Below are positions 21,701-24,915 of a stretch of DNA of 64,000 nt, piece by piece (position 1 is the stretch's first letter; each line of letters opens with the position of its first letter). Both the position numbers and the translations under genes were made by a program. Under the pieces are notes generated by a model. That model was not told the DNA's origin. It ran no database searches and saw nothing but the letters and a program-made list of their open reading frames with translations. The stretch is from Pavona decussata (taxonomy: Eukaryota): the NCBI GenBank assembly GCA_977016875.1, contig CDRNST010000018.1, positions 372,001 to 436,000 of the forward strand. The letters run 5' to 3'.

Positions 21701-22689
21701 GAGATTTTTTCGCGCCTTTTCTTTGCCGCCTTTTGGGGTCCCCTTTATCCTTGTCCTTTTCCTCTGTGCTTTCTCCATTTTCTCCTTTACGGTCTTCTTC
21801 TTTATCTTTGTTTCATCATGTCATTGCTACCATCTTGTTTCATGTTTGGCATGCTCGTAATTCGGTGACTTTTAGGAATTCTTACCTTCCTCCGCCTGCT
21901 ATCGTGAACACAATTATTAAGGATATTCAACTTCCAATTCGCGGTGAGCCTTTTGATGATGTTAGGTATTTCTGGTCGGTTAATAGTGTTTTTTGTCAAC
22001 TTGGTGCGTCTCCCGGGGCGTCTTTCGCTTGCATTGTAATTAGTTGTTTTGTTGTAGTTTTTGAATTTTCTTGTGCGTGTTAACAATATTGTATTTACTC
22101 TGCTTGTAAATAGTTTTTCGCATCTTTGACTTTTTGTATATAGTATTTTAATTTTGTAATTGTCTTTTTGAGATATACTTTTGTACTTTACTTCTCGTAG
22201 ATTTTGTTATTTAGCTTTCTAATCTACTTCTCGTATAGAGATCATTAGCTTTTGTCATTTAGTTATGCAATCTGCATTTGCTTGGTCATTAGCATCTTTC
22301 TCGCTCTTTTTATGTGTTTTGTACTTCGCTCATTTTCGCGCCTTTTTTGCTGTATGACTGTTTTTGCGTACTTTTCTGTATATCAATTTTTTGCATATTT
22401 TTCGCACTTTTTTTTTTCCGTTTGTTTGTTTTACTGCTTGCTTAAGTTTAGTCTCCCTTGTAGCTGTTGTTTTCAATATTGTCTTTAGTTTTTTGCATAT
22501 TTTTGCGCTTTTCTTCGTTTGTTTGTTTTAATGCTTGCTTAAGCTTAGTTTGCCTTGTCACTGTTGTAATCAATATTGTAATTAGGGCTTAGTTTTCTCT
22601 TTTCTTCACCTGCATTTGATTGTAACTGTTGATCTTTTTATCAGTGGGCCCTTTGGATCACCATGTAAATAAACTTTTATAAAAAAAAA
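18772..22689 (+). mobile_element. Keno-like Tx1 element (lineage A) ORF2 and 3' UTR, disrupted, ending at the U2 target
   Basis: QETH, GDFN, KSPGSDG, LDQEKAFD, YADD and C-terminal Cys motif. AATAAA at 22668, A-tail, then TCTGTTCTT (U2 nt 39-47). Confidence 0.9.
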
Positions 22690-22698
22690 TCTGTTCTT

Positions 22699-23553
22699 CC
22701 ATTTAGCGGAAGTTCAGATGCATGTATACACTTGATCGATAAACCGGGACTCCGTTCAGATTTGCCGTTCGGATGGCCTGTTCCATCGGGCTGCATTTTA
22801 ACCAGCTTGGGCAGGTCACTTGAAGCATTTAGGCCAAACTTTTAGGTTAGGATTTGGGGGCCCTTCGTTTTTATTTTGTCGTCTTTGCCGTACATGTCTA
22901 GAGTCTTTTTTCTATAGGTCCGCCTATGGTTTTTTCTTGTTTTTAATTCACTTGTTACCTTGTTATCGCTTCACTGCTATACACATTGTAAACTCGTGTT
23001 TAAATTCACCTGAGGTACCGTGTTATTTGCTTAATTGCTTAACATTGTAACTTGCAACCTTCCTTGACGATCGGCAGTTAAATCACGTTATTCATTACTT
23101 CAACTTGACAATGAGATGGTAAAATCGGGTTACATATCTATATAAACCTTGACGATGGGATGGTAAAATCGCTTTATCCGGACAGTCATCACTGTGGACC
23201 AAGTTCCAGGTTTTATTTTGGACCAAGATCCAAAAATTATTAACCAAGCACTAGCTGCTTTACCACTGTTACCTGAATTTGTGGACATTGATCCGAAATT
23301 TGCTGTGGACAAAGAACTGACCAATTATTGTCACGCAAGAAACAATGTGGATTTGCATAACCCTTGGGGATTGCAACCATCACCTTTTACACCTTGGAAC
23401 TTTTGATAATGGACCAGACATGGCTTCGAATATTGGACACTACTTTCTACCAATGGAGACCTTTGCGTTAACCGGATACACTTATAAAAATTGTTAACTA
23501 CTTAGAAAAATATAAAATAAAGGCTACACAAAGTGGCCGAAAGAAAAAAAACA
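22699..23553 (+). mobile_element. 5'-truncated lineage B copy (3' UTR only)
   Basis: Ends AATAAAGGCTACACAAAGTGGCCG plus A-tail, as at 44320-44352. Bounded by U2-like TCTGTTCTT (22690) and AGTGTCTCTTCTT (23554-23566). Confidence 0.85.
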
Positions 23554-23566
23554 AGTGTCTCTTCTT

Positions 23567-24915
23567 CTGGTCACGCTTTTGGCAGCTCTGCCGTAAGTGT
23601 GGCAAATTTCCTTGTTCCGTAGCCTTGATCGCCTGTTTTTTGTCGTTTGGTTTTGTTTTTAGTCGCTGCTTCCGCTGGAATACTTCTCTGGCCGGCCCGG
23701 TATGTTAGCTGGATTTTGTGACTGTTTTGTATTTTCGCCACGTAAGTCCAAGATGGCCGTTCCCCACAAAAAAAACGTTCCGTTTGGTTGTTGAGGAGTC
23801 TATGGAGGTGGATGCCATGTCCATTGTAAATGCTCTACCAGATTTCAGCGCCCAAATTGTTGGTGTCGTTCCACAGTTCAGGGGAAAGTGTTTCAACATT
23901 ACCCTCCGATCAGTGGATTCGGAGACACAACTGGCCACCGCCGGTTTCGATTACCTCAACGAAGTCAAACCTTTGCGGCTCTTGGGAGCCCGGACCATCC
24001 ATGTGTCTGTATTTATTTCTGTGGAATTTCCTGACAAGGACCTGGTGTCTTTCCTAAAGCAGTATGGTCAACGGAAGACCGAAAACCTTCGCCGCTTGTA
24101 CTACAGTGACGAGGAATAAGCACATATCGAACGCGGTACTCGCGTCGCAGAATTCGTATCACTCGACCGAGATCTTCCACGTAAGCTGGTGACACAGGGT
24201 CTCGAAAAATTTTTTTAAATATTCGGGACAACCTGTGTTGTGCTACCGTTGTGGGTCCACACACCACGTTGTAAAAGATTGTCCACTAACGCTGCGCGCA
24301 GCCAAGAGAGCCACGTGGGCCGGAATCCGGGGGAGAGACAGAGGCTGCTCAGACCACCCCTTCTACCCCTGATGAAACCGCATTGGACGCAGAAACATCG
24401 CCGACCACTAAACCCAATACACCACCTACATCTTCCTATTCTCCAGATACTCAAGCAACCCAAGCAACACCATAGGCTAGCTTTGCGGAAGCAGCCCACG
24501 CTACCCAGGAGCTCTTTACTGAGCCTCCAACTGAACCCTCGCGAAAGCGTGCCCTCCTGTCCACGGCTACAGGCGACCAGCCCGTGGCGAAAAAATCCAC
24601 GCAACCTTCGCCTGCTCCACGAAGCACCGCTAAACTCACGGATTTTCGGACAGATCTCTCCGGTAGAGTGGTGACCGTTAAAATCAATCTTGAAGGCAAG
24701 ACCCCTTAAATTATTAATGTTTATGCACCGAACAACCACTCGGACCGAAAAGAAGTTTTTTGATTCCTTGTGGCGTTTTTTGTTTAGTAATATTGGGTCT
24801 ATTTTTGCAGGCGATTTTAATTGCGTGCCGGATGTCACGCTAGATGATAGAGAGGCGATGACAGGTTTGGAAACAAAGCTGTATTGCAACTTCATTCGTT
24901 TACAAACGTTTACAA
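23567..24915 (+). mobile_element. Lineage B element 5' part (ORF1 and APE remnant), truncated by a deletion into the U1 upstream region
   Basis: ORF1 homologous to 9168-9700; NVYAPNN and AGDFNCVPD remnants. Confidence 0.85.

Follow-up and report, generated by a model that had tools for sequence, protein, structure and literature searches.

Evidence for two clades of U2-specific Tx1-like retrotransposons, with 3' registers one GTA unit apart, in a decayed snRNA gene array of Pavona decussata

When several retrotransposons lie lodged in the same few bases of one gene, do they represent a single family with loosely placed junctions or separate lineages with separate targets, and what does each insertion leave for the next? 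This question is raised by a stretch of 64,000 nucleotides (nt) from Pavona decussata (C18:372001-436000, where C18 is contig CDRNST010000018.1 of a 602-Mb assembly; hereafter the window), which contains no N and in which retrotransposon copies adjoin broken pieces of the gene for the U2 small nuclear RNA (snRNA). A preliminary description of the window had proposed two U2-targeting lineages, here called A and B. The analysis reported here makes it probable that a dead gene array was colonised by site-specific APE-type (L1/Tx1-like) retrotransposons that lack long terminal repeats (non-LTR), of two deeply diverged clades, inserted in sense orientation into the U2 motif GTAGTA with 3' registers one GTA unit apart, the duplication made by B leaving a U2 copy that can be hit again and A ending the series.

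Intact U2 genes stand in tandem, with a period of ~1.99 kb, elsewhere on C18 and on four other contigs, and the array unit in related assemblies runs U2, U1, 5S, with 5S on the minus strand. At the Rfam gathering score, the window contains two genes each for U1 and 5S, one tRNA, and U2 as 3' parts only; three U2 5' parts were recovered by Rfam-level matches below that score. Because U2 is present only in parts here and is intact and tandem elsewhere, in units that also hold U1 and 5S in related assemblies, the window is a decayed, dead part of a tandem U2-U1-5S gene array. An intact copy of the same genome (L001:1501-1692) served as the U2 reference; positions are numbered nt 1-192, and GTAGTA, the motif with which U2 recognises the branch point, occupies nt 33-38.

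Every junction in the preliminary description was found at its given coordinate by blastn against intact U2 and by reading the sequence; the U2 pieces and the A and B elements of the window mapped below between 7830 and 44506 lie on the plus strand. In lineage A, the 3' flank reads poly(A) followed by (A38)T39CTGTTC and the U2 in front of the element breaks off at nt 27-33, a loss of 4-10 bp of target. The 5' junctions follow U2 nt 1-32 (7830-7861), nt 1-27 (26582-26608) and nt 1-33 (30193-30225); the 3' junctions are nine adenines followed by TCTGTTCTT at 22690, and AAAA followed by TCTGTTC at 39249/50, where U2 nt 38/39-192 occupy 39249-39403. The A copy that retains both ends (A2, 30226-39248, P0170-like) lacks U2 nt 34-37. 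In lineage B, the 3' flank reads poly(A) followed by A35GTATCTG, and the 5' flanks in the window end at nt 47-49, giving a duplication of 13-15 bp. Its 3' junctions are eight adenines followed by AGTACCTG at 44352, the start of U2 nt 35-189 (44352-44506), and AGTGTCTCTTCTT at 23554-23566, which agrees with nt 35-47 at 11 of 13 positions; its 5' junctions fall after nt 49 at 8980 and after nt 47 at both 22698 and 23566.

The shortest of these U2 pieces carry no weight by similarity alone. The 9-mer of U2 nt 39-47 occurs twice in the window against 1.2 expected, and the 13-mer of nt 35-47, two mismatches being allowed, is seen six times where 2.3 are expected; neither exceeds chance, and the 10/10 match of nt 40-49 at 8971-8980 is likewise at chance level, its position directly upstream of a B 5' end being the argument. 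By our own arithmetic, 11 of 13 matches at a pre-set position have a probability of ~1e-5, and the pieces are significant because each fills exactly the interval from one poly(A) to the canonical 5' end of the next element. For 23552-23566, MAFFT offered an alternative alignment to U2 nt 28-34 plus nt 40-47; the nt 35-47 reading of 23554-23566 is preferred because all other B 3' junctions counted start at nt 35. A short-read contig from a public run, which may come from the assembly's own sample, bridges 23513-23739 with zero differences.

The two patterns extend well beyond the window. A junction census of 72 loci of this genome and nine loci of other assemblies found clean copies of both in the same genome and in seven other public assemblies; P0016 and P0104, whose contigs lack a flank or lack DNA, fall outside the target assignment. 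The clearest B-type case is a 1021-bp copy of a short B-type element (B-short) standing between U2 1-47 and U2 35-192, with U2 parts 100% identical to the reference, in five loci (L033-L037) that represent one event multiplied by segmental duplication. In another assembly, a full-length element of 5133 bp (P0001, 71% identical to B; L073) lies in the same way between U2 1-47 and U2 35-192; P0003 (L077) lies between U2 1-41 and 35-192, and P0027 (L079) between U2 1-36 and 35-192. Poly(A) followed by AGTATCTG marks the 3' end of the intact B copy (L041) and of L045, two nt-35 3' junctions occur in L039, and P0007 (54%; L074) and P0022 (38%; L078) also join at nt 35, the next U2 after P0022 being broken after nt 43. 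Across the B clade, the 5' junctions are family-specific, at nt 36, 41, 43, 47 or 49, and give duplications of 2-15 bp.

All A-type 3' junctions of the census read poly(A) followed by ATCTGTTC: L043/L044 (P0138-like), L046-L051 (fam4), L052 (P0148-like), L053, L076 (P0124) and L077:410. Further A 5' junctions fall at nt 28 and nt 33 (L053) and at nt 27 (L076). Counting independent events only, there are ~9 A and ~12 B 3' junctions, located at nt 38 or nt 35 with none between. The clade of the coding flank matches the register at every assignable junction, with zero exceptions, and every A and B copy is bordered by U2 pieces that share its strand.

A young array on the same contig (G000:C18:280-158563; L001-L016, L033-L037, L046-L051, L065-L072) consists of higher-order units 13-27 kb long, each of which repeats one fam4 insertion, intact U2 units, one B-short insertion and, ~400 nt downstream of U2, elements that bear ORF1. 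Since these units repeat the same insertions, many array copies are counted as segmental duplicates and not as separate insertions.

At the protein level, both lineages share one architecture. In Pfam searches, the intact ORF2 (ORF, open reading frame) of B (L065:1-3438, more than 1146 amino acids (aa)) and that of the A-type fam4 (L066:1-3426, more than 1142 aa) carry Exo_endo_phos, RVT_1 and zf-RVT, pieces of the APE endonuclease, reverse transcriptase (RT) and zf-RVT domains occur in the window copies, and the ORF1s of both lineages carry a zf-CCHC knuckle. No restriction-like endonuclease (RLE) was matched in the intact A and B ORFs, which have an N-terminal APE domain by Pfam; among solved structures, the endonuclease of human L1 ORF2p is closest to it. 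Only one B copy is intact in both ORFs (C18:141909-147040), with an ORF1 of 424 aa (C18:141909-143150). All 31 matches to the B ORF1 in the 602-Mb genome lie in the array region of C18 (141909-467633); B is strictly site-specific, every B-ORF1 match being inside the U2 array region. One A-type element of 1335 bp (L053:174-1508; C18:240584-241918) bears only an intact ORF1 of 397 aa, with a CCHC knuckle, between U2 1-28 and 38-192, and may be a non-autonomous, ORF1-only derivative.

FastTree, applied to 195 ORF2 sequences of at least 1000 aa each, recovered an A superclade of 111 sequences (support 100) holding A1, A2, fam4 and P0124, a clade of 27 nt-35 elements (support 99) holding B, P0007, the P0022 group and P0027, and a clade of eight with the window's U1-specific elements, placed next to A. 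Under the PMSF (posterior mean site frequency) site-mixture model of IQ-TREE with 53 sequences, the A clade (100) and the nt-35 clade (96) are neighbours (96); under LG+G4 with 35 sequences both clades are kept and the deep nodes form a polytomy. Over the three trees, support stands at 100 for A and at 96-99 for the nt-35 clade. Within the window, A1 groups with P0212/P0028, A2 and the further A element A5 with P0170/P0148, and the copy at 7862-8970 is fam4-like, while 8981-11440, 23567-24915, 42256-43403 and an element X near the window start group with the intact B copy. A and B are separate, well-supported clades in all three trees and may be sister clades: approximately unbiased (AU) tests, run on the 35 sequences under LG+G4, did not reject A plus the nt-35 clade as a sister group (p = 0.43). 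Because the deep topology differs by model and in view of this p value, no claim is made for one versus two origins of U2 targeting. The earlier proposal that B is a separate family is upheld by ~38% identity of the intact B ORF2 to A-type ORF2s, by the three trees and by a register that follows clade; separate does not here mean independent in origin.

Target choice within the nt-35 clade appears not to be fixed. A pair, P0014/P0015, is nested in this clade, and the P0015 element is flanked by poly(A) followed by GATTTCCGTGG (L075:2690-2720, 7750-7780), a flank that we take to be U5 snRNA. An AU test rejects removing the pair from the nt-35 clade (p = 0.001), for a group chosen after the tree had been seen and with three of nine sequences lacking a verified target. 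As judged from these sequences, target switches occur within this Tx1-like group, with a U5 pair inside a U2 clade. Rfam also places U5 beside L081, a U5-specific element unrelated to P0015. Two unrelated Tx1-like lineages are accordingly seen at U5 in two registers, P0015 (L075) and P0052 (L081:1380-1410, 6570-6600), the latter with a duplication of ~13 bp (CCTTTTACTAAAG).

What, then, produced the stacks? A B insertion would leave an upstream U2 of nt 1-47 with both nick sites, open to a later B or A; repeated hits would give head-to-tail stacks spaced by U2 pieces of 9-13 nt, and an A insertion, by removing nt 34-37, would end the series. The window stack runs in this manner: A1, U2 nt 39-47, B-short, U2 nt 35-47, B'. 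A1 (18772-22689) is a 5'-truncated element of the A superclade, P0212/P0028-like (82% aa identity to P0212), with APE, RT, a C-terminal domain and a poly(A) at 22681-22689. The nine bases at 22690-22698 are U2 nt 39-47, the remainder of B-short's upstream target copy after entry of A1. B-short itself (22699-23553), non-coding and non-autonomous, has a fixed 5' end (CCATTTAGCGG) and a tail ending in GGCTACACAAAGTGGCCG and poly(A); it shares homology with the 1021-bp insert of L033-L037, in which the same 5' start follows U2 nt 47, and with L039, and its 5' end remains constant across copies only 68-87% identical. The contig-bridged U2 nt 35-47 at 23554-23566, with two mismatches, is the target copy common to the 3' side of B-short and the 5' side of B'. 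B' (23567-24915) is the 5' part of a full-length B element, with a 5' hairpin, an ORF1 remnant and APE to about aa 153; its 5' end is homologous to L073.

The order of events at 22690-23566 can be read from these pieces. The nt 35-47 piece keeps G36 and T37, which are lost in an A insertion, so no A had yet arrived when B-short inserted into the copy upstream of B'; that A1 is followed by exactly nt 39-47 and then the canonical B-short 5' end shows that it went into the nt 1-47 U2 which B-short had left. The order must be B', then B-short, then A1. The idea that the duplication made by B supplies fresh target for A gains support as a mechanism from this arrangement. B reuses the duplicated copy at least as often as A does, both at 23554-23566 and in a second, independent stack at C18:~317900, where a long B copy ends in poly(A), AGTATCTGTTCT (nt 35-46) follows, and then B-short and poly(A) lead into AGGAACTGTTC (nt 35-192). 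Where a stack is clean, a duplicating B element stands downstream, in line with the model but in small numbers; among the stacks found, no preference for duplicated copies was shown.

The order A, U2 piece, B had been described as occurring twice. It is clean at 18772-24915 and only partly present at 7862-11440, where the A member, a fam4-like fragment (7862-8970) with ORF1 and APE pieces by tblastn and tblastx (8632-8958 being 65% aa identical to the fam4 ORF2 APE domain), has neither a 3' end nor a poly(A). After U2 nt 40-49, an internally deleted B-lineage element follows at 8981-11440, with a 5' hairpin, ORF1 pieces, an APE domain at 10387-11117 (86% identical to the intact B ORF2) and a B-short-like 3' region at 11105-11437.

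Could units of the array with a single element each have given rise to such stacks without serial insertion, through unequal crossing-over, gene conversion or deletion between them? Segmental duplication and rearrangement are plain to see: five identical B-short copies and at least six identical fam4 copies recur at 13-27 kb spacing, the window contains rearrangements such as a U1-type/B chimera at ~42250 and a loss of ~0.8 kb upstream of A1, and the A fragment at 7862-8970 lacks its 3' end. To build the stacks, however, a crossover would be needed inside a shared U2 stretch of 9-13 bp on three separate occasions; the pieces are exactly those that insertion predicts, nt 39-47 after A and nt 35-47 after B, and in the flanking elements the poly(A) is complete and the 5' end canonical. 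We regard exchange as an improbable source of the stacks and keep to serial insertion.

At the other end of the process, the first bases of B-lineage elements, immediately past the U2 junction and at the point where U2 would begin its stem-loop IIa, form a stable hairpin. The hairpin has dG -23.5 and z -5.4 in L073 (2579-2625) and dG -20.1 and z -4.2 at window 23567-23612, the two stems differing in sequence with pairing kept; weaker hairpins (z ~ -2.4) occur at window 8981-9035 and at L077:2502-2550.

From target-primed reverse transcription, the bottom strand would be nicked after the second GTA in A (between nt 37 and 38 or between 38 and 39) and after the first GTA in B (between nt 34 and 35 or between 35 and 36), and the freed 3' end would prime on the poly(A) tail. 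Both nicks would read T^AC if the ambiguous A at each junction belongs to U2. The B 5' side would end downstream of its own nick and so yield the duplication, whose source could be either a staggered cut of the top strand or a leader of U2 sequence borne by a transcript that began at the U2 promoter; the B 5' positions, which differ by family, and the conserved hairpin fit the leader.

The leader may be carried further, to the view that both lineages nick the same bond and that the offset and the apparent duplication are copied from the template RNA, through read-through from nt 35 onward or a U2-promoter start covering nt 1-47. Read-through templates are established for R1Bm, an inherited leader would be expected to give a 5' junction that differs by family with an invariant 3' start, as seen here, and a conserved hairpin exactly at the B junction suggests a role at the RNA level. 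Set against this, all B 3' flanks counted, from eight families in six other assemblies and this genome, come after a plain poly(A) whose length varies, as in tail priming; the first B insertion would still need a nick at nt 34/35, and a leader explains the 5' side and not the fixed 3' offset. Such copying has, in our judgement, a small chance of being the explanation, and two nick positions one GTA unit apart remain the preferred reading.

That A and B are one family with continuous or sloppy junctions, their registers a sampling artefact of a few degenerate copies, has next to no likelihood and is refuted by the data in hand: the window alone offers two A and two B 3' junctions, one of them degenerate, but ~21 independent 3' junctions at nt 35 or 38 only bear out the two registers that had been proposed in place of a continuous distribution, and register tracks clades ~38% identical over ORF2.

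Several observations nevertheless weigh against two nick registers joined by target renewal. The independent events are few (~9 A, ~12 B), many copies of the young array being segmental duplicates, and register, as a clade-level trait, counts as one change on the tree. The supply of fresh target rests on one clean and one ambiguous case; at the latter, 7862-11440, the fam4-like piece stops in APE, and loss of the DNA between adjacent units of the array would account for it just as well. No independent contig covers the junction at 22681-22698, none spanning 22666-22726. Finally, an A at nt 35 or 38 is indistinguishable from poly(A), which places each nick to within 1 nt only.

The remainder of the window is filled by further elements of the same and other kinds. 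A5 (26609-28906) is the 5' part of a P0148-like element of the A superclade. Nested antisense in the 3' part of A2 is an RT-bearing element (minus strand, window ~35020-38500) with a YADD motif near 36030; a U2-like 13-mer at 36106-36118 lies inside this nested RT and was rejected as a junction. The B fragment at 42256-44351 comprises ORF2 aa 366-748 (42256-43403), then a B-short-like 3' region and poly(A). To treat 39616-44351 as one B element was rejected, the stretch being a chimera: a U1-type element follows a U1 5' remnant and extends to ~42250, and B ORF2 aa 366-748 and a B-short-like end then join to U2 nt 35, with the RT N-terminus present twice (41755-42138 and 42331-42714). Element X (1858-5660) belongs to the B lineage, its 1858-3933 part grouping with the intact B copy; no recognisable U2 flank was found at its 3' end (~5655). 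The window start (1-1855) lies inside another long interspersed nuclear element (LINE), with APE at ~378-1000 and the RT start at ~1721-1834, which ends where ORF2 residue 1 of element X begins. Between the two stacks, an ORF with a GIY-YIG nuclease domain (17212-18162; Pfam E = 5e-6) may be the remnant of a Penelope-like element.

Does the protein reveal how the register is set? The hairpin loop of APE is its known DNA-reading loop, and the preliminary description had suggested comparing it between lineages. Its length is constant in almost every sequence compared; it reads FN(A/S)D(K/F)SIG in two sub-lineages of A, is SNxDxSxA-like in the A1-type group, and reads FNGPHSVG in B, NxRDFS(I/Q)R-like in the P0022 group and SN-GRVH in P0027. 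The comparison yielded no register signature: the loop varies by clade and not by register, and its sequence is not common to the three nt-35 lineages. Loop sequence alone does not account for the nick register.

Two related clades act three bases apart within one 13-bp stretch of an invariant gene, and each does so with single-base precision across species. Site-specific LINEs are under study as gene-insertion tools, and the determinants of nick position in APE-type endonucleases are poorly understood; if the reading given here is true, the two clades form a natural matched pair for the determinants of single-nucleotide nick specificity in these enzymes. It would also provide an ecological rule, by which a target-duplicating insertion leaves a safe site for later arrivals and a target-deleting insertion does not, and this duplication rule would account for the element trains in decayed snRNA arrays.

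Among known systems, R1- and R2-type elements of ribosomal DNA offer a parallel, with several lineages at fixed, close sites of one multicopy gene and with lineage-specific target deletion or duplication; they differ from A and B in clade and target, and R2 also in its endonuclease. The U5-targeting Tx1 families and the window's U1-specific elements share with A and B the protein architecture, the arrays and single-nucleotide 3' precision, and differ in their target genes. Utopia shares the target gene, the nt-39 3' flank of lineage A, 5' junctions that differ by family and extend from deletion to duplication of 20 bp, tandem insertion into U2 on occasion, and several families per U2 array (PMC4640811); its endonuclease is of the C-terminal PD-(D/E)xK type and it lacks APE, whereas the elements described here have an N-terminal APE.

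The closest counterpart is Keno (Kojima & Fujiwara 2004, as summarised in PMC4640811 and PMC4494074), which belongs to the Tx1 clade and is reported in cnidarians, U2, U5 and 5S being among Tx1 targets (PMC4494074; U5 in Fig. 3). Keno resembles both lineages in its APE endonuclease, RT, C-terminal zinc-binding region and sense insertion into U2. According to PMC4640811, the downstream U2 flank of Utopia begins at nt 39 and the 3' flank of Keno is identical. The remark that Keno inserts near this U2 position accordingly holds for A and not for B, with its 3' flank at nt 35/36 and duplication of 2-15 bp. The likeness of A to Keno is drawn from the published site and architecture; judged in this way, lineage A behaves as published for Keno. 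We found no description of the second U2 register, the nt-35/36 site, in the searchable literature. The present analysis adds a clean duplication, conservation across assemblies, clade structure, a nested U5 switch and an argument for insertion order. On balance, we see about an even chance that the nt-35/36 elements constitute an undescribed, old clade of U2-specific Tx1-like LINEs, present in six or more additional assemblies and standing alongside the Keno-type nt-38/39 clade, which splits GTAGTA with Keno by one GTA unit, is the source of a U5-specific lineage, and keeps dead U2 open to itself and to Keno-type elements, while the Keno type closes the site.

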